64,000 nt of DNA from Guillardia theta CCMP2712 (taxonomy: Eukaryota > Protista > Cryptophyta): positions 1-64,000 of the forward strand of contig NW_005434498.1 of the NCBI RefSeq assembly GCF_000315625.1, read 5' to 3'. The notes under the pieces were generated by a model, which made no database searches, had not been told where the DNA came from, and saw only the letters and a list, made by a program, of their open reading frames with translations. Made by a program: the position numbers and the translations under genes. Shown in pieces: positions 1 to 18,300 of the stretch (position 1 is the stretch's first letter; each line of letters begins with the position of its first letter).

Positions 1-1733
1 CATCTTACCCTTTCTCCCCTCCCCTGCACCTTTCGTCATGAACACTCGGTAGCATCCCCATTCTTTCTTGATCATCATTCGGAGATCTGCCTCCTTTCGT
101 TTCCCCCGATTGGAAGTAGCACGACTGTTGGTTGATATGTTTCAATCAGGTATCCTAGGATGTGTTTCAGCACAAATTGACTGCATCCATTGACATTGTG
201 AGAAATGATGTTGCCAGGGGCGTTGTCCTTCCTGTGCGTTTCCACCCATGCTGATTGCACTGACCTGTCGGTGGTAGTCGTGGATGGTTTGCTGCCTGCT
301 GGCAGGATTTGCTCCTCCGCCCCCGTTGCCCATTGAAGGTGAGACGAGTTCCCATCTTGCATCTTTGTTGGGCCTGGTAGCTCCTCCTCTCCCCTTGTCT
401 CCTTGTCGTTCTTCGAGATTGGCGCTGTGTGCATTGCTTGTGGCGGAGGAGGTGGCTGGAGTGGAGAGACGGGGCATGAAGCAGGAGGTGGGGGAGGGGA
501 GGACGTCAGGATGTCTACCTGTGCTGACCTGTCTTGTAGTTGCAGGACCGTCGCGGCTATGAGCTTCGTTGATCCTTGTCCTCCTTGCTCCTGCTCGTCT
601 TCCAATCTCTCCTGTAGCCGTGCATCTTCAGATGCCTGGGTCGCCTGTAGATCGCCTGCGCGTTCTTGGCCGTCTTCTCGCCTTTCCATCCGGTTAGGTA
701 TACGTTCCATGGTGAGCTCTGCAGCTTGCCATTCCTTGTAACCTGTATCTTGCGCGTGCTGTGGAGCTCTGCAGATGCGTTGTATTGTTTCTCGCGTGTG
801 CACATGTTCCATACCCCCCCCCCAGAGCCCATCCAGCAGCAGATGTCTTGTTCGCATGAGCCATTGCTGATGGGGGGGGACGCCTTGTTGCCTCCCTGTG
901 TTGAAGATATCTTGTTGTTGTGTTTTCCTTCGTGTCTTTGCGATCAGCAGCAGATGCAGCAAAACGAAAATTCCACAATTGTAGCCGTCTGTTTGTTGCA
1001 GCCCAGTTGACACACATGCCCTCCATGCCGTGTCGTCACAGTGTTCTTGTTGATCGCTAATTGCCTCGGTGATAATCGTCGCCATGAGTGATGCTAGGTC
1101 CATTCGCTGTGCGCCCCCCAATTGAAACTGTGCCTCCCTTTGGCTTCTGACTGTCCCCAGGTCTCTCTCAAGGGCCGTGCTAAGCGAGTCGACGATGTGT
1201 ATTCTTTTTGTGTTAACATCTGCCACGATTAGAATCCAATGATTGCCGTTCTCTACGCAAGGGAATAAGAATGGTTGAGCTGCCCCGGCTAGCAGTCGTT
1301 TTGCTCTCCGTGCCCTTCCCTCCTGATCTCTCAAACCCGCTACTATTCTCGGGAGAACAATGGTCCCTCTCTGCAGCCCAAATTGGTTTCTAGTTTGCTC
1401 GCTGGCATACCTCGTGCCTTGGGGCCATGCTATTTGAAATCTGTCTTCCGCTGGTTCTAAATTGCGGTTTACCTCAACGATTAATGCCTCCATAACGTCC
1501 TCAGAGAGAAATCCATCTTCTCCTGAGTTGAGCAGCGCCGCTGCTCCGTACTCTCTATTGTTTTCCCGTAGACTCCAGGGGATCTCCCCTATCAAGTCGA
1601 ATGTTTGTATTTTTCTGTTTTTTGGATTTTTTTTGTCATTCTTTTTCTCACCTTCTTGTCTCGTTCTGCTTGATTCCACCACGCCCTGGTGCCCACTGTC
1701 CCACCTGCCCTCTCCTCCTCCTCCTGCTTCCAT
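1..1733 (-). pseudogene. ORF2 N-terminus of family A: Ulp1/C48-like cysteine protease plus start of APE endonuclease, frameshifted
   Basis: Protease motifs FLFPCVENGNHWILI...VDSL and QQTDGYNCGIF. APE start ISHNVNG...VVLL, then a frameshift near 110 that removes the QE motif. Another frame resumes LRMMIKKEWGCYRVF, matching D-ORF2 LRKMIKENWACYRIF. Confidence 0.88.
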
Positions 1734-3850
1734 TAGGCGTCAAGCGGCGCGGTTGGGGAGGAGTCAAGCGACATCTCTTCCACTTCTACCGCTCTGCTCC
1801 CTGCTTCGGGTGCATCTTCCACTCGCGCGTCTTCCATCTGTATCTCACTGCTCAAAACAAGTTTCAATTCGTTTCTGTCTCCCAGCATTCCTACGAGGGA
1901 GAGCGCCGTTTCCTCCAGGAATTTATTCAAAGCAATGAAGAGAAGGTCAGTTTTCAAGGGCTTCTCCTCATTTGGTGCGAAAGCGCTGCTCTTGCGTTTC
2001 GCTACCTTCCACGTATGCTTGCCTGCAATCACCCTGACTCGTTCACGCAGTCGCTTGCTCACGGCATTCTCTGCCGCGTTGGCCCCCTTATCAGCCCACT
2101 CTTGTAGCGTGGGGAAGGATGCATTTCCTGGGCTCTCCGGAGCCATCTCTTGCACCGCGTCATCAAGATGGAGTTGAAGCTGTCCTTGCTGTTGCAGCTC
2201 GCTCCTAGTTACGTCAGCAATAGTTTCCTTAAGTTCTTCGACGACCACGTCCGTTCCCGCATCTGGGAGGTTTATTTCATTGATAATGGAACTGAGCTCG
2301 ATCTCTTTCCACACAGTTCCTTCTGCTCTGGTCCCCGTCGTTTGTGACCTGGCCTCAGGGTTAGACTGATCGCGAGTTGCCTGAGGCGACACTTGGAGGT
2401 TCAGACTGCTCGCTGTCGTTTGGATTTCAACTGTGCCTTGTCAGCAGAGGAGCTGTGTGGGGAATTCAGCCATCATCTTTCTTGCACTACTTTCACTGCG
2501 TAGCCGGAGAATGATACCAGACCCATCCCAGATCCCTGTTTCTGGATCGCATTGGAGGTGGATCCGTTGGAGGTCTCTTTCCACCTGTGGATCAAAGCAA
2601 GCGACAGCTCTCCGAATGTTTCGGATGACTTTTGCTCTGCCCGTTTCGTCACTTGCACAGATTTTTTCGATCTCATTTCGGGAGAACTTCCCTGACGGCA
2701 CAGGAGAGGAGATTTGTACCGAGTACAGCATCTCTGCTCCCGTTGCCATTGCCGTGCCCTCTTGCCGCACCGCATTCTTCATATTCTTGTGCAGCGCCGT
2801 TGCTTCCATCTGCACTGAGAACCATTTCAGTATTTTGTCATTCTCTGAGACCAGTCCCAAAGTGACTCCTGCACGATCCTTTCCATGTCGATCGAATGCT
2901 TGAAGAACGATGTCCGCTGCTTCAAGGCTCGAGCACGTTGCGATCCAGTCGACCTCTCTGTTCTGGTTGACTGTTTCTATTCCTACCGCAGCGAACACCT
3001 TCTTTGGCGGTAGGTTCCTCTTGGGGGGGAGGTTCACTGTCATTCCCGCATTTGGGATCAGATCAATGATCGCTAATCCCTGCTTCAGGCATAGCTGCCT
3101 GTAGATCTCACATATGTCACCTGTGCTCGAATCGTTGAGCATCAGGAGTTGGGCCACCTCAGCTAGGATTCCAACTCTGCCCATGTTCTCCTTCTTTGGC
3201 CGCATCTTGAACGAGATCGGTGGGTTGGCTGCTGGGTTCACTGCTAGGATCCTCCTGCCTGCCACCTTGAAGGTACCTTCTCCTTTCCAGAGTTTCTCAG
3301 CCGCCTCATTGCGGACAAAGGTGATCACTGCTGGGATCTCCGCTGCCTGCACAAGGTCAGGCTTCAAGGGAGCCTTGAAGATCAGGCTCCTGCTGTCTTG
3401 CGTCTGATCGACGATCAAGCCTTGCTCTTCAAGCTTGAGGCATAAGTTTTCCACCTGTCTGGAAAAGTATGCAGGGATCCCAAGTACCTTCATGGTAATC
3501 GTCTGCATCTGCCTTTGTCTGTCAGCTTGGACCTCTGACAGGTACCACTGCTTGACATCGTCACCCCACTGCCTGAGCCCTTTCGGATTCTCCAGTGACG
3601 AGGGTTCAGCGAAGCTGCATGTCTGACTGATGGCTTCGGCTAAGGCTTCCAAGGAAATTTCTTTTGCTTTCAGAGCTTTGCTCGTCCTGCTTTTGGGGTT
3701 CTGCCTTGCGAATTCATCCAGTCTCCGCATCAGTTCGGCTGATGACGGCATCGTTGCAGCTTCCGTCTGCCTCTTGAGGTAGCTGGAGGTACGGTACTGC
3801 ACGATCTCGTCAGGATTCACAATAGATATTGGCCACATGTTTCGAAGCAT
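1733..3850 (-). pseudogene. ORF1 of family A, interrupted by one in-frame TGA (2441-2443)
   Basis: ORFs 2441-3850 and 1733-2392 are in the same frame and align end to end with D-ORF1 (NPKSRTSKAL, FKAPLK, AEKLWKG, SPGNASFPTLQEWA, LLFIALNK). Its stop overlaps the ORF2 start as TAATG. Confidence 0.88.
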
Positions 3851-3925
3851 TCTCGATGGTTTCCCGAGCTTCCTGCGTTCCTGGCGACTCTTGCTCTACC
3901 ACGCAGGGACCCCGCTGATCTGCAT

Positions 3926-4003
3926 GCCTCAGATAAAGGGATCCTGCCTCAGATAAAGGGATCCTGCCTCAGATAAAGGGATCCTCTCAGATAAAGGGAT
4001 CCT
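3926..4003 (-). repeat. 5'-terminal tandem repeat of family A: 3 x 20 bp (GCCTCAGATAAAGGGATCCT on +) plus one 18-bp copy
   Basis: Read directly from the sequence. Confidence 0.95.
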
Positions 4004-4020
4004 CCTAAACCCTAAACCCT
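4004..4020 (-). repeat. Short telomeric tract (CCCTAAA)~2.5
   Basis: cctaaaccctaaaccct. Confidence 0.9.
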
Positions 4021-4197
4021 TCAAGCTCTCCCCACCTCCGCGCTTCCGCCGTCGGACTTTTCTGATTCAGACAATTGATCCTTGTCGCCGATCCTCATGT
4101 GACAGCGAAGGACAAGATGGAACTATGTTGTCAAGCGCAGATGGGAGCGATGTTGTATCCGTGAGGATCCGGACGTCTCGGATACTCGTACGGGTAC

Positions 4198-6354
4198 TTA
4201 GTATCCGCCCTGACATCTAAATACGGCCTCCCTTTGACGCGCATGCGCTACCGTGCGCAGTGCGTGTGTGCAGTTTACCTTAAGTAAACGTAGTCTACCT
4301 TTGTTCTCTTGGTCCTTCTTGTCCACCTTCAGCGAGCAGGCCAGCACATGCATCTCTGCGAATTTACTCAGTGCTATGAACAGGAAGCTAAGAGATCGAC
4401 GCTCTATGTCGTCGCTCTCCGCCTCCTGCTCAAGCTCAGCAGCTGCCGTTGCCCGTGGCGAGAACGCGCTGCCCCTCCTTGCCTTCTTGCTCTCTCCTTG
4501 CACGCGAGTCCAGCGCTTGCTCTGCAGCCACTTCCCCAGCTTCTCCTTGAGAACGTTGCGCCCAACTCCCTGCTCCTCTGGCATCTTCGCCCACTCTCCC
4601 AGCGACATGAACTCCAGGCTCCCCGGAGAGTAGAACGTGTCGTGGAGGTTGCCAACGGCCTTGTCCAGGACCAGCTTGATCGGCTCGCTCGTCCCTGCCT
4701 CGTTCAAAGAAGCTGCATCTTCGATGACTGCTGACAGCTCGCTGACGAGCTGCATGTCCTCTTGGCTTGACGGAGATGCTGCCTCCATTGTGATCCTCTC
4801 CAGGTCTGTAAACTCCAGCCACTCTCCCTCGCTCTCCTCCTGTCGCTGCGCTGCGTCGCTGGTGCCCCGCTGACCAGCCGCCTCAGAGTCAGGCTCCTTG
4901 TCGAAGCCGACTGCTTCGAGCTTGGTTGCTGCGCCTTCGAGATAGAAGGGCAGCTCCTTCATCATGCGTCGAGCATCCTCCGTGGAGCCGAGGAGGATGC
5001 ATAGCTTGGACCCGTTCCAGGACTTGGTGTTCAAATCCTCCTCCATGTCGATGCCTTCAACGTTGATCTCGAGCCTGTTAGCGATCTCCAACAAGACTCT
5101 CTTGACTCTTGCGATGGACGTGTTGCCGCCGTTGCACAGCCCCTCCATCTCCTTCCTCGTGAAGCGACCAGATGCCGCCGTCGACTTGATGATGATCTTG
5201 ATCTCCTTGCCGTCCTTGCCGCCTGCCTTCTTCTGCATCCTTGATGCCTTCTTCAACTTATTTCTGGACACAAAGCGATCAGCTGTCAACTCGACTGCGA
5301 GCGCCTCTCTGATCTTCGGGTCCTCGCTGAACAGAGTCAGGTGTACTCCCTCCATCGCTTCGCTCTCTCGGAAAGCTCGAAATGCTGTATCATTCGCCTC
5401 TGGGCAGCTCGAGGAGACGATCCACTCCACCTCCCTCTGTCTCCAGATGACGTTGGCCCCTACAGCGATGAAGCCTTTCTGACCTAAGCCTTTGTGGACT
5501 TGCTGTCCTGGCGCCCCAGCGACCAGCATGCCTGCCAGCGGCTGGAGTTGGACCGCTGCAAGGGACTGGCGCAGCAGCTGATAGCGATAGACGGCAGCTA
5601 TCTCAGCCGTTGTCATGCCGCCCAAGGTTAGCAGGTGAGTCAGCTCTGCCAAGCTGCCCCCTTTGCCCCAGGGTCCTCTCTTGGCTCGAATCTTGAAAGA
5701 TCGATCGTGCACGATGCTCACATGTACAGCTGTGAACTTGCGACCATCGATCGCGAAGTCCTCTCTTCCCTGCCAGAGCTTCTCCGCTTGTGCATTGCGG
5801 AGGAAGGAAACAGTCACCGGGATCTCCTCAGCACTCGCTATCTCGGGTCTATACGGGGCCTTCCACATGATTGCTTTACTCTCTTGCACTGAGTCTACGA
5901 TCAGTCCGATCTCTTCAAATTTCTTCTTCAGCTTTTCTTCATGGTTGACATACACCGAGGAGATGCCCAGGAGAGTCATGGAGATGAAGGAAGTCACCTC
6001 GTTGCCTGCTGAGGCGGTGTATGTCTCGACCTTCTCCTTCTTGGCTTCTTCAATCTGCTGCATAAACCACTCTCTGGATGCGTCACTCCATCCAGTCATC
6101 GCTTCTTGCAGAAACTCACGTCGTGCCTGCTGACATGTCGAGCGGATGGCTTCTGCGATAGCGTCGGGGGTGCATCCCTCCACAGCCTTGCAAGCCTGGG
6201 CTGTCCTGCTGTTCGGATAACGCTTCGCGAAGCTCTTCACCCTCTCGACGAGATCAGCTTCGAGGACAGAGGCATCCACAAGTCCGCTCTGCGTGTATTG
6301 GCATGATCTCCGATACAGCAGGTTGCGAACATTTTCATCATACTGAAGAACCAT
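4198..6354 (-). CDS. Retrotransposon ORF1 protein, family B (~718 aa from first ATG)
   Basis: Open frame with blocks shared with A and D ORF1: YPNSRTAQA, WKAP, EIPVTVSFLRN, AEKLWQG, SFKIR, QREVEWI, GRFTRKE, SPGSLEFMSLGEWA, FLFIALSK. Confidence 0.85.
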   Translation of the reverse strand: MVLQYDENVRNLLYRRSCQYTQSGLVDASVLEADLVERVKSFAKRYPNSRTAQACKAVEGCTPDAIAEAIRSTCQQARREFLQEAMTGWSDASREWFMQQIEEAKKEKVETYTASAGNEVTSFISMTLLGISSVYVNHEEKLKKKFEEIGLIVDSVQESKAIMWKAPYRPEIASAEEIPVTVSFLRNAQAEKLWQGREDFAIDGRKFTAVHVSIVHDRSFKIRAKRGPWGKGGSLAELTHLLTLGGMTTAEIAAVYRYQLLRQSLAAVQLQPLAGMLVAGAPGQQVHKGLGQKGFIAVGANVIWRQREVEWIVSSSCPEANDTAFRAFRESEAMEGVHLTLFSEDPKIREALAVELTADRFVSRNKLKKASRMQKKAGGKDGKEIKIIIKSTAASGRFTRKEMEGLCNGGNTSIARVKRVLLEIANRLEINVEGIDMEEDLNTKSWNGSKLCILLGSTEDARRMMKELPFYLEGAATKLEAVGFDKEPDSEAAGQRGTSDAAQRQEESEGEWLEFTDLERITMEAASPSSQEDMQLVSELSAVIEDAASLNEAGTSEPIKLVLDKAVGNLHDTFYSPGSLEFMSLGEWAKMPEEQGVGRNVLKEKLGKWLQSKRWTRVQGESKKARRGSAFSPRATAAAELEQEAESDDIERRSLSFLFIALSKFAEMHVLACSLKVDKKDQENKGRLRLLKVNCTHALRTVAHARQREAVFRCQGGY

Positions 6355-6444
6355 ACTTAGAAAGCTATTTGAAGTATACAAACCTCTTGCTTGCAGCTTC
6401 CTTGGCGCCCTGGCGGCTTCCCCTACACCTGACGAGGAGCCATG

Positions 6445-6505
6445 CTGCCGAAAATAACGGCGCCTGCCGAAAATAACGGCGCCTGCCGAAAATAACGGCG
6501 CCTGC
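6445..6505 (-). repeat. 5'-terminal tandem repeat of family B: 3.2 x 19 bp (CTGCCGAAAATAACGGCGC on +)
   Basis: Read directly from the sequence. Confidence 0.95.
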
Positions 6506-6591
6506 CCCTAAACCCTAAACCCTAAACCCTAAACCCTAAACCCTAACCCTAAACCCTAAACCCTAAACCCTAAACCCTAACCCTAACCCTA
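6506..6591 (-). repeat. Telomeric tract (CCCTAAA)n with some CCCTAA variants
   Basis: Read directly from the sequence. Confidence 0.95.
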
Positions 6592-7011
6592 TATTATATA
6601 TATTGAGTTTATTAGACTCTTAGTCAAGAGTTTCATAGCNNNNNNNNNNNNNNNNNNNNNNNNNNNNNNNNNNNNNNNNNNNNNNNNNNNNNNNNNNNNN
6701 NNNNNNNNNNNNNNNNNNNNNNNNNNNNNNNNNNNNNNNNNNNNNNNNNNNNNNNNNNNNNNGCGCTGCCTGAAATAACCGGGGCTGCCTGAATAACCGG
6801 CGCTGCCTGAAATAACCGGCGCTGCCTGAAATAACCGGCGCTGCCTGAAATAACCGGCGCTGCCTGAAATAACCGGCGCTGCCTGAAATAACCGGCGCTG
6901 CCTGAAATAACCGGCGCTGCCTGAAATAACCGGCGCTGCCTGAAATAACCGGCGCTGCCTGAAATAACCGGCGCTGCCTGAAATAACCGGCGCTGCCTGA
7001 AATAACCGGCG
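6592..7011 (-). mobile_element. Ends of a further element spanning an assembly gap (3' end 6592-6639; N gap 6640-6762; 5' repeats 6763-7011)
   Basis: 6603-6639 is identical to the 3' terminus at 7165-7201. The other side of the gap is a 19-bp tandem array joined to telomeric repeats. Confidence 0.75.
6763..7011 (-). repeat. 5'-type tandem array, >=13 x 19 bp (GCGCTGCCTGAAATAACCG on +)
   Basis: Read directly from the sequence; the left end is hidden by the gap. Confidence 0.95.
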
Positions 7012-7148
7012 CCTAAACCCTAAACCCTAAACCCTAAACCCTAAACCCTAAACCCTAAACCCTAAACCCTAAACCCTAAACCCTAAACCCTAAACCCTAA
7101 ACCCTAAACCCTAAACCCTAAACCCTAAACCCTAAACCCTAAACCCTA
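7012..7148 (-). repeat. Telomeric tract (CCCTAAA)~19
   Basis: Perfect heptamer array. Confidence 0.97.
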
Positions 7149-8330
7149 TTATTATTATTATTATTTGAGTTTATTAGACTCTTAGTCAAGAGTTTCATAG
7201 CTAAGAACTATTGCTCTTCGCTCATCTCTCGCCTAATGATCCGTCTAAAGGGGTTCCCAACCTTGGGAGGTTGGCCCATTTTCCTATAGGCCCCTTAGGC
7301 CTGGTTGCTTCCGTATTACTTGTTTTCAGTAACGATGTCCTCCGGGCCCGTTCCAATTCCGATCCCGGTCCCCTTCCTTATTTTCGCTAAGTTCCATTGC
7401 ATCTTCCTGCCCCTTCCCCCCCCAGCATGCAGTCGCCCACTGTGGCATGGCTGTATCTTCTCCTGCTGGCTAGCCCTTCTCTTCTTCCCTTCATGCAGCC
7501 CATGACCATGCGCCATGGGTGGCTTGTCCATGAGCCGCGCCTGCCCCCATCGGACTACATCGACTCTCTTACCCTTCTTGCCGTCCATAGCGTATGTTGT
7601 ACCGCCAGCAGTTGCTTGATTGCTGCTGTCTTGATGCCTTCCCATTCCGTGTCATCCACCCTTAGCCTCCTGAAATTCTCATGCCATTCCCTCTCCATGA
7701 TCGATCCTTTCACTCCAGCTATGAATGTTGCTTGTTCCACTTCATGGTCAGGTAGCAAAGCTGTGATTTCTGCTCGTAGGGGGGCATATTTCTCTTCCTT
7801 TTCCTGAAATTTCTTCTTCAGGCATTCCAGACTTGTTTGTTCGACTCCGTCATATTCCGATGTCCTTGCAAATTCGATGAGGACAATGCGTTTGATGCTT
7901 GCAAAGTAGCAGCAACCGTCTGGTATCCATTGCCCTTCTCGGTGCATTGAAGTCCCCATCGCTTCCATCACGATGCGTATTGGAGTGTCCCACCATGAAT
8001 TGACCTGTACCCTTTGTTTCCTCCAGCTCTGCTGCAGTCTTACCTTGATCTTCTTCATGACTTCGTTGTGTGCTTTTTGGATCATATCTTGGAATTGCCT
8101 ACACGCAAGCTGAACATGTCCCCAGGTTTCTTCTCGGTCTGGACAGTGAGGACAACATGGTGAGTTAGTCTTCCCCCATTGAAAGAGCTTCTTCCTCGTC
8201 GGTGCTGAGAAGGTAAACCTAAACCCTAAACTGTGCCTCCCTTTGGCTAAGCATAATCTGAACGCTCTCCCTAGTAAATCTCTTCCCACATGCATTTCGA
8301 GCATGAATTTCTCTGTCAAGGTGAGGTCTC
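7147..8330 (-). mobile_element. Family C element, 5'-truncated 3' fragment: ORF2 C-terminus (CCHC + restriction-like endonuclease, 7555-8319), 3'UTR and (TAA)n tail
   Basis: Motifs CPHCPDREETWGHVQLAC, AHNEV, IPDG...VLIEFARTSE, KEEKY and ATFIAGVKGSI align with the D-ORF2 C-terminus. The (TAA)n tail runs into TAGGGTTTAGGG. Confidence 0.92.
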
Positions 8331-8594
8331 AAGCCTGACTGTGAGTCCGACTCATGATCACTGGCAGCGGCCTCCGACTGAGCGGAGTGACCGGGTCGGA
8401 CGGTCCCGGCCCTGCAGTGCCCGGCCCCGGCGCTCCCGGTCACAGCTGAGCGCTTCTTTATAGGCTCCCGGCCCCTCCGACCGTCGCACTCCCTCCGATT
8501 CCCGGGCCTCCGGGCCACGACTCTCAAGGTACCGTACGGTCTGACTTTCGCCTCCCACTTGTATGGCCGCTGAGTCCCGGCGGGCACCGCCAAC

Positions 8595-8955
8595 CACCTG
8601 CTTGCCGTTGGCAGACAGGTTCCCCAGCACATAGCAGGCATACTTCTGTACGTCCTCGCTCCCCGGATGCTTCTCCATAGCCGCCAAGATCGCCTCGATG
8701 CCCCCTGCCTTCCTGATCTTCTCTTTGTTCGCGTCGTTTTTTCCCGCCAGGTTCCCAAGCGCCAAGCAGGCATACTCCTGCACCTCCTTGATGTCAAGAT
8801 GCTTCTCCATAGCTTCTCTTTGTTCGCGTTGTTGTCCGCCAGGTGCCCCAGCGCCACCCTGCCTTCCTGATCTTCTCACAGTTTGCATTGCTGTTTTCTG
8901 CCAGGTTCGCCAGCGCCAAGCAGGCATAATGCTGTACCGTGTCCTCGCTCATGCT
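8595..8955 (-). pseudogene. Armadillo-repeat gene fragment, frameshifted
   Basis: Repeated units VQ(H/E/K)YAC(L/Y)(A/V)L(A/G)NL(A/S)..N.ANxEKIRKAGGIEAILAAMEKH are spread over several frames. Confidence 0.75.
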
Positions 8956-9120
8956 CTTGGAGACATCAGAGGAGGAGCTGCTAGCTGGCAAGCCGATCTC
9001 CCTGGAGCTAGACAAGAGTGTTGGCAAGCTGCATGACACCTTCTGCTCGCCGGGCAACGTGGAGTTCATGACGCTCGGAGCTTGGGCAGCCACGCCGACG
9101 CTGGGAACGAAGCGGCTTGG
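8950..9120 (+). pseudogene. Short fragment of another ORF1 paralogue
   Basis: PISLELDKSVGKLHDTFCSPGNVEFMTLGAWA compared with B-ORF1 PIKLVLDKAVGNLHDTFYSPGSLEFMSLGEWA. Confidence 0.75.
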
Positions 9121-9212
9121 TGAATTCGTTGCCAGTGTAGTTCCATCTCTTGAACACAATGATCCCACAGCAGGGGCCACGGAGGCCGCAGTACCTTTGA
9201 CCTCCACCACCC

Positions 9213-10005
9213 ATCAGAGAGGCGCTCGCAGTCGAGTTGACAGCTGATCGCTTTGTGTCCAGAAATAAGTTGAAGAAGGCATCAAGACTGCAGAAGAAGG
9301 CAGGCGGCAAGGACGGCAAGGAGATCAAGATCATCATCAAGTCGACGGCGGCATCTGGTCGCTTCACGAGGAAGGAGATGGAGGGGCTGTGCAACGGCGG
9401 CAACACTTCCATCGCAAGAGTCAAGAGAGTCTTGTTGGAGATCGCTAACAGGCTCGAGATCAAAGTTGAAGGCATCGACATGGAGGAGGATTTGAACGCT
9501 GGAGTTTACAGACCTGGAGAGGATCACAATGGAGGCAGCATCTCCGTCAAGCCAAGAGGACATGCAGCTCGTCAGCGAGCTGTCAGCAGTCATCGAAGAT
9601 GCAGCTTCTTTGAACGAGGCAGGGACGAGCGAGCCGATCAAGCTGGTCCTGGACAAGGCCGTTGGCAACCTCCACGACACCTTCTACTCTCCGGGGAGCC
9701 TGGAGTTCATGTCGCTGGGAGAGTGGGCGAAGATGCCAGAGGAGCAGGGAGTTGGGCGCAACGTTCTCAAGGAGAAGCTGGGGAAGTGGCTGCAGAGCAA
9801 GCGCTGGACTCGCGTGCAAGGAGAGAGCAAGAAGGCAAGGAGGGGCAGCGCGTTCTCGCCACGGGCAACGGCAGCTGCTGAGCCGCCGAGCAGGCTCGGA
9901 GGCGGAGAGCGACGACATAGAGCGTCGATCTCTTAGCTTCCTGTTCATAGCACTGAGTAAATTCGCAGAGATGCACTGTGCTGGCCTGCTCGCTGAAGGT
10001 GGACA
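9213..10005 (+). pseudogene. Near-identical inverted copy of B-ORF1 3' half (reverse complement of ~4320-5313, with a ~210-bp internal deletion)
   Basis: Nucleotide-level match read by eye. It ends abruptly at ...GAAGGTGGACA, where telomeric repeats begin. Confidence 0.92.
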
Positions 10006-10049
10006 GGGTTTAGGGTTTAGGGTGTAGGGTGTAGGGTTTAGGGTTTAGG
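10005..10049 (+). repeat. Telomeric tract (TTTAGGG)~6 with two TGTAGGG variants, opposite orientation to the tracts at 4-7 kb
   Basis: Read directly from the sequence. Confidence 0.95.
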
Positions 10050-10129
10050 AGACCGCCGGAGTAACAGCCAGACCGCCGGAGTAACAGTCAGACCGCCGGA
10101 GTAACAGTCAGACCGCCGGAGTAACAGCC
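10050..10129 (+). repeat. 5'-terminal tandem repeat of family D: 4 x 20 bp (AGACCGCCGGAGTAACAG(C/T)C)
   Basis: Read directly from the sequence. Confidence 0.95.
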
Positions 10130-10217
10130 ATGCTATCCCCCCCTGCAGTTTGAGGGGATCTCTGCGAGCTAGGGTGCTGAACAGGATATCTTTCTGTGCA
10201 GAAACGGTTGTTTGATC

Positions 10218-12350
10218 ATGTCACGGTATCTATCCAAAGAGGAAAGGAAACAGATTGCTGGTGTCCGAGTTTCCCAGTTCCTAAACAAGGACACGACACC
10301 TTCAGCACCTTCGCTAGGAGAGCTGATCCGAAGATTGGAACACTTCGTCAGGCAGTACCCTCAGAGCAGGACAGGCAGAGCCTTGCAGTCCAAGGAAGTC
10401 TCGATGAACGCCTTAGCCGAAGCCATTCGACAGACCTGCAAACATGCTGAAGTCAGGAGCCAGGAGGATGCCATCAAAGAATGGGGGGAAGAAGGACAGT
10501 CGTGGTATGTCTCTGCATGGAACGCAGACAAACAGGAGGTACTAGACAAGAGTGCCTGCATCGATGCTTCAGGAGCGTCCCCCGAGAGTGGTAAACTGAT
10601 TACCATGGCTATCCTCGGAGTTCCTACCCAGTACATAAAACAAGTTGAGGTACTGTGTGAGAAGTTGAAGGATCAAGGACTCTTGGTGCACGAGGAGCAG
10701 GGCAAGAAATGCATCTCGTGGAGAGCCCCGATCAAGAAAGATTTGATTCCGACAGTGGATGAAATCCCAGTCGTGGCAACACTCCAATTGAACGACGCAG
10801 CAGAACTGCTGTGGAAAGGACAGACGAACTTCAGGATCGACGGAAAGATGATCCGCGCGGCGAACGCGCATTCGAAGCATCCTTGCTCCTTCAAGATAAG
10901 GCCACAGAAGGATAAGCACTCTGGCAAGGCGGGGGCCCTAGCTGAGTTCTCTCACCTCCTCAAGATGAATGGCATGAACTCAGCTGGGATTACGGAGATC
11001 TATCGTCAATACCTGCTGCAACAAGGAATAGCTGTGTTGGAGGTGCAGCCGGAAGCGGGCATGCAGCTAGAGGTCAAGACGAAGAGGAGACCTCAAGGTC
11101 AGCCCAACAAACGCACTTTCGCAGCAGCCGGAGTGGACGAGATACGACAAGGAAGAGAGATCGATTGGATTGCGAGATGCTCTTCGACGGACGTCCTGAG
11201 CACCACGCTACGGATGTTTGAGGGAGACGACAGGAATGGAGGAGGCATACACCTCGGACTGATGTCGGAAGATGAAAAGATCCTCAAATGGTTCACTACT
11301 CAGGTTAGTGCAATCACCAGGGTATCGAGACAGCATCCAATTAGGTTGGACTTATTGCCCGACGCGCTAGGAGCAGTACCACGAAGAGTGACCTATGAGG
11401 TGCTGGTCAAGAGTAAAGCACAGAAGGGAAGGTTCACCAGAGAGGAAGCTGAACAGATCTGCGACGGGGAGGATCTCTCTATGGGCATGACAATTCGAGG
11501 ACTGAGACGGATCGTGGCGAGCTGGAAGGAGTCAGCGGCTGAGCACATCGTCAAGATCTCCTCGAAGGAAGATGTCGAGACCAACAGCTGGAACGGTGAA
11601 CATCTAGTGCTCAGCTTCTCAGAAAAAGAAACGGCGATCGACATACTCAGATCCTTTGCGCCATGGGACAGGGCGGGGAAACTTCTTCTCCTAGAGCCAG
11701 GCAGTGCCAACATCTGGGAAGCAATCGCTACAGAACCCCCCACGGAGCCTCTGTGGGCACAGGTAGATCTCGAACGGATCGAGAATGAGATCAACATCCC
11801 AGAACCAGAGGCAAACGTGGTCCTCGAAGACATCTACAAAGTTCTGGAGGAGACTGTCAACCAGGGACAGAGTGCAGAAAACCAAGCTTGCAAACTCAGG
11901 CTCGATGGAGCCATAGTCGGCCTGTACGACAGCTTGTCATCTCCTGGAAATGCATGTTTTCCGACGTTGAAGGAATGGGCGGAATCATCCTCGGCAACCC
12001 AGGACGACGACATGCAAATTTTGAAGAGTAAGATTGCAAGAGTAAGCGAGCAGCATGCGTGGGAGACGGTAGCATCAAGAAGACGCCAGGGAGCCTTTGC
12101 AAAAGCAACAGGGAGAGGAGGGGAGAAACAACAAAAAGAATTTCGAACTGACTTGTTGTTTCTTGCCCTGAATAAATTAGTTCTCACAGCCACGCTAACC
12201 TACCAAGGCAGCGTAGGCTCGGGAGACGAAATTGAGTTTCTCTTGAGCAAGGCAGAGGAGGAGATGGGACTGGAGATGTGCCTCTCAACTCTAAAACCGA
12301 ATCATGACAGGAGGAGGAAGGGAGGAGGAAGGGGGGAGTGCCGGGAGTAG
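10218..12350 (+). CDS. Retrotransposon ORF1 protein, family D (~710 aa, no recognisable Gag knuckle)
   Basis: Long ORF upstream of and overlapping ORF2, homologous to A and B ORF1. Confidence 0.88.
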   Translation: MSRYLSKEERKQIAGVRVSQFLNKDTTPSAPSLGELIRRLEHFVRQYPQSRTGRALQSKEVSMNALAEAIRQTCKHAEVRSQEDAIKEWGEEGQSWYVSAWNADKQEVLDKSACIDASGASPESGKLITMAILGVPTQYIKQVEVLCEKLKDQGLLVHEEQGKKCISWRAPIKKDLIPTVDEIPVVATLQLNDAAELLWKGQTNFRIDGKMIRAANAHSKHPCSFKIRPQKDKHSGKAGALAEFSHLLKMNGMNSAGITEIYRQYLLQQGIAVLEVQPEAGMQLEVKTKRRPQGQPNKRTFAAAGVDEIRQGREIDWIARCSSTDVLSTTLRMFEGDDRNGGGIHLGLMSEDEKILKWFTTQVSAITRVSRQHPIRLDLLPDALGAVPRRVTYEVLVKSKAQKGRFTREEAEQICDGEDLSMGMTIRGLRRIVASWKESAAEHIVKISSKEDVETNSWNGEHLVLSFSEKETAIDILRSFAPWDRAGKLLLLEPGSANIWEAIATEPPTEPLWAQVDLERIENEINIPEPEANVVLEDIYKVLEETVNQGQSAENQACKLRLDGAIVGLYDSLSSPGNACFPTLKEWAESSSATQDDDMQILKSKIARVSEQHAWETVASRRRQGAFAKATGRGGEKQQKEFRTDLLFLALNKLVLTATLTYQGSVGSGDEIEFLLSKAEEEMGLEMCLSTLKPNHDRRRKGGGRGECRE

Positions 12351-15300
12351 GCAAGGGGGGGAGAGGGAAACGGTTTCAAAGGAAACGCAACATGTAGATA
12401 GAACATTATATTTTTTTGATTGGATCGAGGAGATCCCATGGTCAGACAAACGAGGCGACAAGGAATTTGGCATCACTGCCCTGAACAATCGAGGAGTAAG
12501 CGGATTTTTATGCGAGAACATGATCGAAGTTACTCTCAATGAGATGAGCAAGGCTCTTCAAGGAGGAAGAGCAATACATATGGTACGCAAAGGGAGAGCT
12601 CGTGAGGACCAGCAAACGCGGAACATCATCTTCTTGCCAAGGGTAACATCCAGTCTGCGAGACGAGGCGTCCCGCTTGAGAGTCGGGAACAGATTTCACC
12701 TCAGCAGCTTGAGAGATGAGCAACACACCTTCCTGTTCCCAACTATCATCCACAGCAACCACTGGATTCTAATTGCATTAAGATATGATCGGCGATGCGC
12801 GTACATCTTGGACCCCCTCTGCGAGGACAGAACGAGCACAACGAGGGACCCACGAGGGATCGAGGGAGCGAGGAATCTTGTAACAACGGGGGAGCACGCA
12901 AAAGGAGCAAGAGAAATGGCTGAGCTGACAATCGGAGTGATCGAACACATCTTTGACGATCAGACCAATGCCCCATGGCAGATACAGTGGTGCTCAGCCT
13001 TCCAACAGGAAGATAACTTCAACTGCGGAGTGTTCGCTATCCTTCACACCTTACTGCTCTGCGAGACAAATCAAGACGGGCTAGCAACGATGGAAACGAG
13101 GACAAGACTAAGACTTCCGCAAGAATGGCTGATGCAAACCAGAACACAACTGATTGCAGCTCTCACCCATCTGGAGAAGATGGAGGAAACGGCCCAGGTA
13201 ATTCTGCGATCTCTGCCGAAGGAGGCGAGGGTGCAAGAGAGCTTGAAATCGACGACAAAGCCGGAGGAGGAGGTACAGTCGAACGCAATCCAGCGGCTGA
13301 TGACCTCGGCGACAAAGCTTGAGGAGGAGGTACAGCCAAACGCAATCCAGCGGCTGATGAACTCGACGTCAAAGCTTGAGGAGGAGGTACAGCCAAACGC
13401 AATCCAGCGGCCGATGACCGCGACGGCAAAGCCTGAGGAGAAGGTACAGCCGATCGCAATCCAGCGGCAGGCGACCACCACGAAGCCCCAACCAAGACCT
13501 TTTGGTGAGGAAATGGAGGAGAATGCACATTCAGGAGAGAAAACCTCCCAGAGAGGGAAGGAGCGGAGGGGGAAAAGGCAGGAGGAGCAAAGGGGCAATG
13601 ATTGGGCGCAGATGCATCGAAAAAGCTCAGACCCAGGTTTCCTCATCTCACAAAATGTGAATGGTTGCAATCACTTTGTTCTCAAGCACATCCTCGCATA
13701 CTTAATCCAGTCCTTCCAACCTGGGGTTGTGCTACTACAAGAGGTAAGGGTCTCGGCCCGCGACGAGAACAAATTAAGGAAGATGATCAAGGAGAACTGG
13801 GCCTGCTACAGAATCTTCCTGGGGCCTGCGAAGATCAATGCGAAGAAGGGGAAAGGAGACCTGAGGTTGGTAACGCTGGTCCACGCTTCCCTCTCGCCTT
13901 CCCCTTCCCATGCCGCTCAGGCGTGCAACAAAGAAAAGAAATATCGAAACCGAGTGTTTTCGATCAAAGTCGGAACAGGGAAAAATTCTTTTTTAGTCAC
14001 GAACCTCCATCAGGTACCGGCGGAAAATGCGATTCGAGAGCAAGGGGAACTGTGGGCAGAGCTGCTACACCTCGCTCTGGGAACGAGAGAGACGCACATC
14101 ATAGCCGGAGACTTTAATGCAGCAAGAACCAACACAACAACACCAATGCGGAGAGGATATTCCCCCTCATCTATCACCGCAAAAGCAGATGAGAGATTCG
14201 AGAAATTCCTGGCAGACCTTTCCGCACACCGTACACTCTCATATGAACAGATCAGCGGGACGGGGACGACTTTTACCTTCTCAACATGGTACAAACAAGA
14301 ATTGATAGAAGCCAAACTCGATGCAGTTCTCGCTATCCACCCCCCATCTAATGAGGACAACTTCCCCAACATCTCCCTTCAATCGTGGACGGTCGACGGC
14401 TGTGTGATAGGGGGAGCAGTTGATCACAGAGCCCTGGTGGTGCAAGTGCACACCAAGTTCACATCCGAGGAGACGCAGCTAATCCCACGAGTGGAAGTGC
14501 ATCAGATGAATTCACGACAGAAGAGGGGGGAAACCCCTAAAAGCAGATGGGTGCTGGATCGCGATACGTGGGAGGAGAAGAAGATCGAATGGGCACAACA
14601 ACTAGATGCAAACATACGAGACATGCGAGCTAAGGCGCAAGAATGTAACATTTGTGAGATGCTCGCCAACTCTCTACCACTAAAGGAGGTAAAAATCAGA
14701 AAGGGACGGAGGCGACATTCGAACAAAGAACAAATGGATTTGAAGAGATCGATCCGCAACTTGCGGACTAAACTTAGGGAAGCATCACAGCAAAGACCAG
14801 CGACTGGAGTACCTACGGAAGCTACATTACAACGAGAATTGCGAACTAAGATCGAGAGGTTCAGAACGATATGTGAAGAACGAAACAACGAAGTTTTCCA
14901 AGAGATCTGCCAACAGCAGCAAAGACGGCTTGGCACGGTAGGCAGCCGTGAATCCCAGAATGCAATGGGACGCAAGAATGATTTCACTCCCAAAGAACCG
15001 ATGATAAGTCAAGACATCAAGAAAAAACACCCTAACTCCCTTCGTTGCCACAAAGGCTTGGCTCTTAGACTGCTCGGCAAGATAGTCGACAATGCCGACG
15101 AGCTCATCAACCAACTCGAAGCAACCCTATCTAGCGAAGACACGAGGGGTGTTAGAGCATTTTGGAGTGCAAACCAGCAACTGATGATTGGGATCGAGCG
15201 AGAGGGGACAGATGACTGGCTCTTTCTATCACTGCTACCTGCAAACACAATCACGAAAGCAATTGTAGCACTAGAAGAATTGGATAAAACAACATGGGAG

Positions 15301-18300
15301 ATAGCAGGATACCGTGATCTCACGGATCATCTCCCAATGCAGAAGGTTAGAGAGCTTGAGGACGCGGACCATACACGATTCTTCTTCAGCGTCAACGCAT
15401 GCACGAAACAAGGGACCTGCTCAAAATGCTCAAACATCGGATGTATGCTCCCCTTGGCTGACTCAAGCGACGAGACCATCGGAGGGGGAGGGATGACCCC
15501 GTACTGCACAAAATGTAAGTCGTTCACAACCGTGGCCCCAAGACGGATCACACCGCCTGAGGGGGTGCAGCTTTCAAGGAGACAACAACAGGAAATCACC
15601 AGACCCCTGGCACCGGGAGAGATTGATGTCTGGCTCGCCTCGGCGCCGAGACGAAAGGCTGCAGGACTTGACCTCATTTCGAACGAAGTGCTGCGGGCGC
15701 TGCCACCAGCATGCCGAGAGGAAGTTGGCAAGTTAGTCAACGCAGCCCTAGAAGGCAAAGCTGAGGTTCTCAACAAGACAGCGAGAGTACGCCTCCTGCC
15801 AAAAAATCAATTCTGTCACATTCTCGAAAACATGCGGCCTATACGCGTCATGTCAACGCTTACTCGGCTGGTTCAGGCAATCCTGGCGCATCGTCTGAGT
15901 AAGACAGTAGAAGCAAACAACGTCCTCACAAACTTCCAGGAGGGGTTCCGTCCAGGCAGAAGCACAAGTCGGCAGGCTCATCGACTGATCTCGATCGTAG
16001 AAGAAGCAGAAGAGGCCAAAACGTCCCTAATTCTCTTGTACCTGGACTTTGCGAACTTCTTTAACAATGTGGCAATCGAGGTGGTCGAGCAGGCAATGAA
16101 CAGCCTAGGCTTCCATCCTGAGGACATTAGAACTGTGATAGCCTGCAACAGTGGAGTCGAGCTGCAAATACAAACAAACGAGTTCAACACAGGGAAAATA
16201 CCTCTAATGATCGGGCTGCCTCAAGGTGGAGCAAGTAGCCCACAACTGGCCAACTTGGTGCTATGCATCCTCTCTAGACAATTGGACAAGTGCAGCACAG
16301 GAACAACAAACAACCTGTCCTTCGCCGATGACATGGTACTCATCGCACACACGATGAAAGAAATGCGAGAATTGGTAGCAGTGGTGGATTCCTTCTGCAA
16401 ATGGTCAGGACTGCAAATCAACAATAAGAAATCAGAGATAACCAGCTTCGACTATGCTCGCAAGGGAGAGGTTCCTGGTGCGAACAAAATAACGGTCATG
16501 GGGGAACCTGTCGAAGCCCTACCGGCTACTAAACCGTTCAAATATCTCGGCTATCGCATCTCTCTGTGGAAGGAAGAAAGACGAAGAATAAAGGGCTGCC
16601 CTTTCACTTGGGGAGAACGAGCATACGTCTTTGAAAAAACCAAAGAACTGATCAACAATATCAGCTCGTCGAGTTATACTCCTGCGCAAAAATTCTACCT
16701 GGTGAAAGTTGGAATTCTCAACGTCTTTCGCTACTCCGCAGTCATGACTGGATGGACTTGGCGAGATCTACAAGAATTAGATCAACTGTGGATCAGAGCT
16801 TTTAAAAAAGCCTTAGGACTGAGCAAAAGTACAGGGAATGGTATATTCTACCTGCCAACAGAGAATGGAGGGCTGCAAGTCCCTCATCCTGCCCCAATCC
16901 TAGGGCGAGCAGCGCTACGATACATCGAACGAGAAGTGAATAGTAAGCAAGGTGGAGACATCCAAGATAGACTGATATCTAAACTCAGAAACTGGTTTGC
17001 GGAATGGGGATGCCAAACAATCATCGAGCTCCAAAAAGAAATGAATTTTCGAACTATGGAGCGTGATGTGGTGCGGGGACCCGAAGCTTTAGCAGTCTGG
17101 CTGGCGGAAAAACTAAACACGAGGATCAGCTGGGCCCACATAGAAGCAGGTCACCTACCTGGAAGCATCTCCCTCCTTCATAGGATGGAGGATATGGTGG
17201 CAAACTTGAACGACAGCGACAGACCACAAGGCTGGACGAACTTCCAAGCCTTATGGAGGCAACTCCCGAAACTCCAATTCTCCTTGCTACGCAATATACG
17301 ACCTATCGCTGACGAAGAACTGCATTTGCCAAGGAAGCTCTGGCCTTTCCCAAGGCAACGCGAGGAGGCGGAGGGGATCGTAATGCAACTGCTACAAGAA
17401 AATGTCATCTGGGTAAGCAGCGTCAACAGAGCATCAGGAACAAAGAGGAAAAGACGAGAGGTTGCCACGCAGGATAGTGCTACAACCCGAAAACGAAAGT
17501 CACACCTGCAATCAGAGGAGGACCGGGAGGAGACATCCAAAAAGCATCGGGAAGCAGCAGAAGAGAGAAGGCCACACCCAGCTCATGCAAACACAAGATC
17601 CCTCATGGCTAAACTACTAGGCAATCTGGATCAACAGGAACACCTAATCCTAAAAGGTAAGGAAAGTTTCAAAATCAAGGGCGACATAGCAATCATGGAC
17701 CGGCCCAGAAGTCACACGGGCCAAGAACAAGACATCAAAGAAGCTGAACCTTCCCTTCGCTCGGCGCCATTTGCGAGGAAAGAAGATGAAGATGGAGCCA
17801 AGAACCCAGAGAAGACAGAGATCCTACTGCAAATTGCTAAGTATATCAGCAAAACACATAACAGCTCACTCAACTCGCAAGCTTGGTGGGAACATCTGAC
17901 CACCGCCATGGCTGAAATTCGAGATAGACAACAAGGCCTTCCGCTGTCGTACGAATTTCTAGAACACTTGGGGACGCTCGCTGAAACAAAACAGTTCAGC
18001 AACTGGCCCACCCTCTATCACCCGACAATCCAGGCCGCAACCGATAGCTTGCAGGAAGACGAGGTTCGACGTGAAATAATATGGATCGACCAACAGGAAC
18101 AATACCTCAGCTACGCCGCATGCGAGTCTGGAACAATCTTGATCGGATGGAACCAAACTTGCTTCAGGAAAGAAATCCCTGACGGCTTCATGCTAGTCGG
18201 TAAGGTACCTAAAGGATCAGAAATATGCTACGCTGCAAATTTCTGGAGGACGGGCGATCGGAGCCTCAGGAAGTCACAAGACGACCTGATTGTCTACTGC

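Follow-up and report, generated by a model that had tools for sequence, protein, structure and literature searches.

The short tandem arrays that precede the elements in our window, a stretch of 64,000 nucleotides from Guillardia theta CCMP2712 (contig NW_005434498.1, positions 1 to 64,000), are probably reiterations of the first ~20 nt of the element's own RNA that were made during retrotransposition and are not a fixed part of the element. We put the probability of this reading at about 65%. The window holds four such 5' arrays, associated with telomere-specific LINEs. The initial annotation had offered two origins for them, reiterative, telomerase-like recopying of the RNA 5' end and portable promoter monomers with an orientation-independent Myb-type site. 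Variable unit boundaries, units anchored at the terminus, truncated ends that duplicate themselves, mixed arrays, and a drop in RNA coverage together point to reiterative copying or template switching and not to inherited monomers or a free satellite; the recopying proposal thus fits the origin of the arrays, and the promoter-monomer proposal is not supported as such.

The elements are APE-type non-LTR retrotransposons. ORF2 of the family D element (12304-19809, 2501 aa) carries an APE endonuclease (Exo_endo_phos, 9.5e-8) N-terminal to the reverse transcriptase (RVT_1, 1e-34), together with weak Ulp1-like and zf-RVT matches; the domain search found no RNase H and, in Pfam, no restriction-enzyme-like (REL-type) endonuclease of the MoTeR/FoTeR group. 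In phmmer searches the RT matches the solved L1 ORF2p and R2 structures at ~1e-19 each, equal scores that cannot separate the clades. ORF1 encodes a protein of ~710 aa in which no Pfam family was found and whose homologues, 94-100% identical, carry GUITHDRAFT names. No LTR-type terminal repeats were seen in the elements, 5' truncation is frequent, and a 3' tail marks the insertion junction: copies with 5' truncation, 124-634 nt in length, terminate in (TAA)n or (CTA)n, after which the telomere begins. The sense strand corresponds to the telomeric G strand (TTTAGGG), the upstream flank ends in TTTAGG at 39 of 86 5' ends and in TTTAG at 13 of 86, and all copies near contig ends have their 3' end outward. 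These elements are therefore telomere-repeat-specific LINEs that, like TRAS/SART, insert in one orientation and in a preferred register within telomeric repeats.

All four arrays of the window adjoin TTTAGGG tracts, as Tandem Repeats Finder (TRF) and the sequence itself show. The initial annotation had placed each of them between a telomeric tract and a 5'UTR; this is correct for A, B, and D, which run through CATG into the 5'UTR and ORF1, whereas the UTR side of the family C array (the "gap element") is lost in an assembly gap. In the A array on the minus strand (3925-4003; TRF 20 bp x 4.1), one unit of 18 nt and two of 20 nt lie upstream of the final unit, which runs into the UTR (L031) and is directly followed by a GCATGC box (3922-3927, with CATG at 3923-3926) identified from the alignment and the sequence. 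A short minus-strand TTTAGGG tract (4004-4020) separates the array from a family B copy on the same strand (4017-6444) comprising the 5'UTR and ORF1 (4198-6381). The 3' side of this copy is truncated at ~4017-4020, a truncation found at no other of the 90 loci that we compared, and is therefore a break followed by telomere addition and not the native 3' end. Its CATG box (6441-6444, minus) adjoins the B array (6445-6506, minus; TRF 19 bp x 3.3), which holds three 19-nt units and a 2-3 nt remnant (GC) at the telomeric tract lying upstream in the sense direction (6506-6591, minus).

Beyond that tract, a C-type element is represented by its 3' end with an A/T-rich tail (6592-6639, minus; matching 7165-7199) and is cut by the assembly gap (6640-6762), after which comes the C array (6763-7012, minus; TRF 19 bp x 13.2). 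With a C-type 3' end on its left and the UTR-proximal side of the C array on its right, the gap must replace at least one whole element body in addition to the UTR-proximal array end. The 19-nt units of this array number at least 13, the pair that borders the gap being variant, and the count of 13.2 is a lower bound; elsewhere in the genome, other C copies join the C unit to a CCATGG 5'UTR. A telomeric tract (7012-7148, minus) lies upstream of the array in the sense direction. It is followed by a 5'-truncated C-type element (7149-8215, minus), of which the 3' portion of ORF2, weakly matching zf-RVT, and a (TAA)n tail remain. A unit cap is absent from this element, and a short telomere tract (8216-8233) precedes it. 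On the plus strand, a telomeric tract (10005-10049, with the G strand on plus) has been added to a truncated, inverted B fragment and lies upstream of the array of family D, subfamily D3 (10050-10130; TRF 20 bp x 4.1). This array comprises four 20-nt units with a C/T variant 2 nt from the unit 3' boundary, and passes through its CATG box (10129-10132, plus) towards the D element body (10212-19809, plus), in which ORF1 (10212-12350) and ORF2 lie.

To place these arrays in context, we compared 90 loci of the same genome selected by 5'UTR similarity. They yielded 86 distinct 5' ends, which belong to at least nine families (A, A2, B, C, D, D2, D3, E, and F were aligned); 66 of these ends bear repeats and 20 have a single unit. 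Copy number ranges from 1 to 44 units per insertion (median 3); it is thus not fixed and, it seems, not encoded in the transcript. More than 99% of units have a period of 17-26 nt. Of the arrays, 23 are uniform and 14 are mixed. Arrays show a block structure and filler at the resets; in one insertion, for example, three canonical 19-nt units are preceded on their 5' side by 34 units of 21 nt (L052). Uniform arrays of 39-44 units would demand remarkable processivity of a reiterating enzyme; growth subsequent to insertion, by slippage or unequal exchange of the kind common in subtelomeres, could account for them instead. Two loci (L004 and L005) have in common an inner block of a variant and six units and differ in their outer units alone, which may reflect RNA-borne inheritance of arrays or subtelomere duplication. 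The higher-order patterns of two further loci (L034 and L050) resemble DNA-level duplication.

In every case the unit starts at the insertion's own terminus, including truncated termini. Internal units begin at +1 in 513 of 572 cases, and 46 further ones belong to a D subfamily with AGACC that was parsed against an AGGCC reference. In three insertions that lack the original 5' end, the duplicated segment is the truncated end itself (A, 11-34; B, 16-36; B, 2-63). The 3' boundary, in turn, differs between insertions of the same family, which is not the fixed, transcript-inherited boundary of L1-type monomers. Family B units measure 18, 19, 20, 21, 22, 25-26, and once 61 nt despite near-identical UTRs: the B 5'UTR alone gave 295 first-look candidates genome-wide, of which 40 were scored, and 40 of the 42 matches listed are 99-100% identical. 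Family A units are 18, 20, 21-24, or 26 nt long, and those of 26 nt include the CATG box (L037).

The junctions between units often contain 1-3 extra bases, with filler such as G, GA, C, or AG. The reset does not rest on a microhomology search by the polymerase, as a perfect AGG match at +16 in family A is never used. Such filler is expected of template jumping with untemplated addition. Some products combine different sources: 16 E units are joined to 3.5 A2 units, eight A2 units are followed only by TAATA and then by telomere without any element body, and A units cap the terminal 45 or ~130 nt of a 3'UTR. All six landing points of such mixed or capped products lie within +21 of the acceptor. 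Independent data agree with this anatomy, since a Logan contig from another run (L091) leads from telomere into C units of 23 and 22 nt and then into a CCATGG UTR.

The array border is also visible in RNA. Sense RNA-seq depth of the B copy (2026 run) is ~16x at 6344-6441 and 0.15x at 6442-6520, a drop of more than 100-fold at the boundary between UTR and array. The run consists of short 60-nt reads, with ends carrying poly(A), and no pile-up of read starts was reported in it.

Alignment of the nine family termini identified A(+1) and CATG at +19 to +22 as the only invariant positions, and from this conservation a core-promoter role for both is plausible. Other motifs proposed by the initial annotation fared less well. 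The spaced core TTAT.T..GGCAG is common to A, B, and C, and also to A2, but is absent from D, D2, D3, E, and F. Part of it, GGCAG, arises partly from the unit junction, where the GCA of a unit end meets the GG of the next unit start, and its sharing largely reflects common descent, given that B and C, like A and A2, are close relatives whose UTRs also align. An inverted core in D is superfluous because the direct orientation aligns at least as well (CGCCGG ... CAG), and the match does not exceed chance. Similarly, the TAACNG Myb-type site is a weak match not above chance and occurs in three of the nine aligned families, in antisense in B and C, which form one lineage, and in sense in the D lineage.

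These observations can be accommodated by a model in which a LINE inserts into TTTAGGG repeats with its sense strand on the G strand. The endonuclease would nick the C strand, and first-strand cDNA would be extended from the 3' tail towards the 5' end of an RNA that would start at the invariant A(+1) and carry the conserved CATG at +19 to +22. On reaching the template end, or on leaving it early, the polymerase would resume ~17-26 nt back; its template might then be the same RNA, a different copy, or a short RNA fragment from the 5' terminus. Before resumption, 1-3 untemplated bases would often be added, after which copying would again proceed to the end, and the cycle might run 0 to ~40 times before the cDNA joins the upstream TTTAG(G) end. 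The polymerase would probably be the element's RT, acting either at the end of first-strand or at the onset of second-strand synthesis. One possible ruler for the ~20-nt distance lacks support, since no RNase H domain was found in ORF2. A possible benefit is that a complete 5' end and start site may be regenerated. The initial annotation had suggested that the arrays buffer 5' loss, which is unproven; it is the 3' ends and not the 5' ends that face the chromosome end, so terminal erosion cannot be buffered, and at most the arrays could buffer incomplete copying.

A bolder version, which we regard as possible but doubtful, grants the element RT a true repeat-addition mode. A discrete ~20-nt RNA reaching from the 5' terminus to CATG would be reused in cis and in trans, laying family-specific 19-20-nt satellites at nicked telomeres, sometimes without an element body, and the enzyme would represent a natural intermediate between LINE RT and telomerase. 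Orphan arrays next to telomere repeats can also be explained by breakage and telomerase healing, which are frequent here: among 87 distinct sequences that precede telomere tracts, about 40 are not native 3' ends.

Inheritance of the arrays as promoter or 5'UTR monomers that are transcribed with the element, as in rodent L1, and change in number through start-site choice, 5' truncation, slippage, or unequal exchange, appears rather unlikely to us. Each canonical unit junction does rebuild C-A-G-G, a pyrimidine-A initiator-like step, and A(+1) and CATG are as invariant as a core promoter would be. The block common to L004 and L005 and the higher-order repeats of L034 and L050 would fit inheritance as well, and the 5' VNTRs of the fungal FoTeR elements have been ascribed to slippage (PMC12857005). 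However, inherited monomers would not be expected to change their boundaries among B insertions with identical or near-identical 5'UTRs, to begin at the terminus of each insertion even where this is truncated, to be interrupted by filler or joined across two families, or to lie beyond a steep fall in RNA depth, and slippage gives no reason to anchor every duplication at the element terminus.

The position of the repeats exactly at the 5' junction would also suit a host repair polymerase that builds them while sealing it, by repeated annealing, extension, and dissociation on the cDNA end. This would be theta-type end joining, whose known signature of templated insertions of ~5-30 nt, microhomology of 0-3 nt, and filler counts in favor of this proposal. 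We nevertheless consider host repair improbable, because tens of uniform rounds far exceed its usual yield, one period recurs in nine families, and units also occur beside 3' tails (L055), which points to the polymerase of target-primed synthesis. A reading of the arrays as ordinary subtelomeric minisatellites, simply adjacent to the elements, has a very small chance of being true. Orphan arrays without an element body exist, but the genuine ones occur in the same context, as truncated, capped, or mixed products. Every family has a unit of its own, which reproduces exactly the first ~20 nt of that family's 5'UTR, all arrays share the orientation of the telomere, and 79 of 96 unit clusters run into CATG and UTR, some of the other 17 being counting artefacts caused by a variant unit or the N gap. 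The arrays are thus not a free satellite, and neither outcome that the initial annotation named as refuting was borne out, copy number being variable and, it seems, not set by the transcript. Reiterative copying of the RNA 5' end remains our preferred explanation.

How LINE insertion is completed and how a full 5' end is kept is a long-standing open question in retrotransposition. The repeat-bearing junctions sampled here record the behavior of a polymerase at the template end, with its ~20-nt reset, untemplated bases, and family switches. If the element's own RT is responsible, this would amount to telomerase-like repeat addition in a telomere-specialized LINE. It would then have consequences for the proposed relationship between telomerase and retrotransposons, for how 5' monomer arrays originated in other LINEs, and for gene-insertion tools that rely on an RT and have their weak point in the 5' junctions. 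Reiterative copying predicts that transcription begins at A(+1) in the unit next to CATG, that a +19/20-nt ladder forms in vitro, and possibly that 5' RNAs of 18-26 nt are abundant.

The closest counterparts in target choice are the TRAS/SART elements of Bombyx mori, R1-clade LINEs of the APE type that are reportedly specific for TTAGG, keep a fixed register and orientation, and form head-to-tail arrays with telomere repeats between them. The Guillardia elements resemble them as APE-type LINEs in telomeric repeats with one orientation and a preferred register, and differ in an RT that scores equally against L1 ORF2p and R2, in the long ORF2 with its weak Ulp1-like match, and in an ORF1 without a Pfam family. 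We know of no variable tandem reiteration of the 5' terminus in TRAS/SART. Rodent L1 monomers are ~200 bp long, with fixed boundaries and proven promoter activity. Both systems show LINE 5' tandem repeats of variable copy number with a truncated outermost unit, but the Guillardia units are 17-26 nt long, vary in boundary by insertion, and are anchored at the terminus. The (TAA)n of the I factor and the 3' repeats of CR1/L2 are likewise short tandem repeats that an RT builds at a template end, and 3' tails of (TAA)n or (CTA)n are variable in Guillardia too. Those repeats form at the 3' end, at initiation, whereas the reiteration described here is at the 5' end and has a ~20-nt unit.

MoTeR of Magnaporthe and FoTeR of Fusarium are telomere-targeted and carry variable short 5' repeats, TTCGGG(TTTGGG)n in MoTeR and VNTRs in FoTeR (PMC7367193; PMC12857005). 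They share with Guillardia telomere specificity, variable 5' repeats, and a setting of interstitial telomere tracts, breaks, and healing (PMC7367193; PMC12857005). In contrast, they use a restriction-enzyme-like endonuclease (CRE/SLACS group), their 5' ends and not their 3' ends face the chromosome end, and the repeats of MoTeR are telomere-like 6-nt units that do not copy the first 20 nt of the element. Insertion-specific unit boundaries have not been reported for either. In vitro, an R2 RT that has reached the 5' end of its template can pass to a second RNA, adding untemplated bases and needing little microhomology, and R2-mediated transgene insertion yields "extra template" 5' junctions (PMC11331408). 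Continuation past the template 5' end with untemplated bases is what the Guillardia junctions suggest; R2 jumps, however, are occasional and lead onto unrelated or full-length templates, whereas in Guillardia they would be the rule, at 66 of the 86 ends, with landing points no more than ~21 nt from the 5' end and up to ~40 repetitions. With telomerase, finally, the arrays would share the repeated copying of a short RNA segment by an RT with a reset, giving tandem repeats at telomeric DNA. The template would be the end of an mRNA-like element RNA and not an internal segment with a defined boundary, the ~20-nt unit would be copied with imprecise resets, and extension would take place on the C-strand side at a nick.

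Tandem Repeats Finder called four arrays in the window: A at 3925-4003 (20 bp x 4.1), B at 6445-6506 (19 bp x 3.3), C at 6763-7012 (19 bp x 13.2) and D at 10050-10130 (20 bp x 4.1). All four adjoin a (TTTAGGG)n tract, and telomere matches number 33 in the window against 0.02 expected by chance. On the ORF strand, the elements read (TTTAGGG)n, array, CATG, 5'UTR and ORF1, which means that their sense strand is the telomeric G strand. The elements point their 3' ends towards the chromosome end, so terminal erosion cannot be buffered by the arrays. The assembly gap next to array C is flanked on the left (6592-6639) by the 3' end of a C-type element, which matches 7165-7199; the right flank is the array's own UTR-proximal side. 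The gap therefore conceals one element body or more, and the 13 C units in the window are a lower bound. In other C copies and in an independent Logan contig, the C units are joined to a CCATGG 5'UTR.

The ORF2 of the intact element (12304-19809) encodes an apurinic-type endonuclease and a reverse transcriptase (RT), the latter matching the solved L1 ORF2p and R2 proteins about equally well. ORF2 has a match to the Ulp1/SUMO-protease family in its N-terminal part, at 1.1e-7 in the A element (75-1733, minus strand) and weak in the D element (12304-13650, plus strand); this putative domain would be unusual for a LINE. ORF1 has homologues at 94-100% identity among the annotated hypothetical proteins of Guillardia theta CCMP2712, and the cryptophyte Hanusia phi has a homologue with 37% identity. 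Besides a Hanusia phi homologue, proteins P0014 and P0037 include a fragment of B ORF1 at 100% identity that is filed under the dinoflagellate Heterocapsa arctica. This entry is probably a carry-over in a transcriptome and incidentally shows that B ORF1 is expressed. Exact look-up of B ORF1 in public contigs gave no match, and a homology search with the endonuclease-RT piece returned a single paralogue and nothing else. In the papers searched, we found no description of telomere-specific LINEs in Guillardia and no account of insertion-specific 5' units.

Genome searches with the 5' regions as queries yielded 34 matches for D and 50 for A. For B, 42 matches were listed (295 first-look candidates, 40 of them scored), and 40 of the 42 listed are 99-100% identical. 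Nearly all copies lie near contig ends in telomere orientation. The C unit junction occurs 437 times, also near contig ends, and its arrays hold from 2 to more than 26 units. A D copy with three units at locus L011 sits in non-telomeric DNA and lacks the telomeric upstream flank. In 90 loci chosen by 5'UTR similarity, we counted 107 distinct telomere-to-sequence junctions and resolved the structure of 86 distinct element 5' ends, which belong to at least nine families. Family-specific 5' arrays beside telomere tracts, first noticed in the window, are thus real and general in this genome.

The first ~20 nt are specific to each family, and an alignment of nine termini leaves only A(+1) and CATG at +19 to +22 invariant. 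Of the hidden motif that the initial annotation had seen in the arrays, these positions hold; the remainder reflects shared descent. The Myb-type TAACNG site is weak, occurring in three of the nine aligned families and on differing strands, and the proposed inverted core in D is weak and unnecessary. By analogy with LINEs that have internal promoters, A(+1) and CATG might act as an initiator and a downstream positioning element.

The number of units per insertion ranges from 1 to 44 among the 86 5' ends, with a median of 3 and a single unit at 20 ends. All but three of 524 unit periods fall within 17-26 nt, the commonest being 19 nt (250), 20 nt (190) and 21 nt (47). The 5' boundary of the unit is almost always the element terminus, and its 3' boundary varies among insertions within one family. 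B arrays contain units of 18, 19, 20, 21, 22 and 25/26 nt, and once of 61 nt, joined to UTR copies that are identical or nearly so; A arrays contain units of 18, 20, 21-24 and 26 nt, the longest of which include the CATG box. Three 5'-truncated insertions (A 11-34, B 16-36 and B 2-63) carry repeats of the truncated end itself, and in A 11-34 and B 16-36 the return point moved along with the end and again lies 20-23 nt back. One to three extra bases are frequent at the junctions. In make-up, 23 arrays are uniform and 14 mixed, with a tendency towards blocks of one period; at locus L052, for example, 34 units of 21 nt lie outside (5' of) three units of 19 nt. At locus L082, a B array of 16 units has no telomeric upstream flank and comes directly after another B 5' region, of which the first ~240 nt are present; this stretch is in effect one long unit.

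The variable 3' boundaries, the self-repeated truncated ends and the mixed arrays support reiterative recopying of the RNA 5' end, one of the two origins that had been suggested. We assign a probability of about 0.65 to the reading that the arrays are reiterated copies of the terminal ~20 nt of the template, made during insertion. The polymerase would reach the RNA 5' end, or quit early, restart 17-26 nt back, on that template or a different one, and copy to the end again; these cycles would go on until the cDNA joins the upstream TTTAG(G) end. They would take place either as first-strand synthesis ends or as second-strand synthesis begins, with a complete RNA or a short 5' fragment as acceptor.

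Several products combine families or lack an element body. At one locus, 16 family E units run into 3.5 family A2 units, with the join in mid-unit, and 11 nt of a 3' end and telomere repeats come next; beside this product lie eight A2 units with nothing but TAATA between them and telomere repeats. Elsewhere, A units cap 3'UTR remnants (the last 45 nt or ~130 nt), and a 100-nt internal fragment is flanked by B units. The landing point is at most 21 nt from the acceptor 5' end in all six such joins. Such products are hard to obtain by slippage and simple if the polymerase switches template onto the 5'-terminal segment of an element RNA. As a limit on this reading, growth after insertion may account for long uniform arrays. 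An inner variant block is common to loci L004 and L005, and higher-order repeats are present at L034 and L050. Near the A2 arrays of L051 (minus orientation), a short inverted C-strand telomere piece, AACCCTAA, sits between G-strand repeats and partial A2 units and may be a snap-back or strand-switch product.

As to what sets the return point in reiterative recopying, realignment guided by microhomology is ruled out as the sole rule. In family A, the AGG at +16 matches the terminus perfectly over 3 nt yet is never used; the return point is therefore not chosen by base pairing alone. Many junctions, moreover, contain filler. The 61-nt unit, at B locus L078, falls where the terminus and +58 to +63 share a 5-nt match (GCGCC); base pairing may therefore serve longer resets. 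An element-encoded RNase H acting as a ~20-nt ruler is unsupported, since Pfam (E<=1) detects no such domain in the ORF2 pieces; a cryptic domain or a host enzyme is possible. A conserved 5' hairpin in the unit was rejected as well: in eight families, ViennaRNA folding of the 5'-terminal 21, 26 and 60 nt gave weak and inconsistent z-scores (mostly -2 to +1.6).

Transcription of family B was followed in one 2026 RNA-seq run of short reads, some with poly(A), mapped over 3600-6520. Sense-strand depth falls from ~16-18x in the two bins that border the array (6246-6441) to 0.15x across the array plus telomere tract (6442-6520), and this short-read library gave no reported pile-up of read starts over 3600-6520. 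On this moderate evidence, B transcripts start in the last unit or close to it, and the arrays are not part of them. At 5861, ~580 nt from the B 5' end, 31 reads in minus-strand sense carry a poly(A) run absent from the genome, and depth just upstream in sense is 400-490x. Family B thus seems to produce a short 5' transcript that is polyadenylated and abundant.

Native 3' ends are of three types in the 90 loci: they finish in AATAAACTC and a (TAA)n or (CTA)n tail that varies from ~3 to more than 15 repeats, and TA/GGGTTTA always comes next. The variable tail length suggests reiteration at initiation too. Of 87 distinct sequences that precede telomere tracts, about 40 are something other than native 3' ends; they include the B copy of the window, with its unique end at about 4017. 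Breakage followed by telomerase healing is frequent in this genome. Orphan arrays followed by telomere repeats can be explained by healing, and the case for reiteration was therefore not rested on them. Within 9210-10004 (plus strand), the 3' part of B ORF1 is present as an inverted copy with an internal deletion. The copy stops abruptly at GGTGGACA, followed by TTTAGGG repeats with TGTAGGG variants; it looks like a healed break at which the D element arrived later.

The telomere target and array architecture are shared with TRAS and SART, in which we know of no 5' reiteration. Rodent L1 monomers are about 200 bp long and have fixed boundaries. MoTeR elements carry variable 6-nt telomere-like 5' repeats (PMC7367193) and FoTeR elements 5' VNTRs ascribed to slippage (PMC12857005), but both differ from the Guillardia elements in endonuclease and have the opposite orientation (PMC7367193, PMC12857005). 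R2 now and then forms "extra template" junctions (PMC11331408). The Guillardia elements are telomere-specific LINEs, a known kind, and preserve an unusually clear record of how a polymerase behaves at the end of its template.
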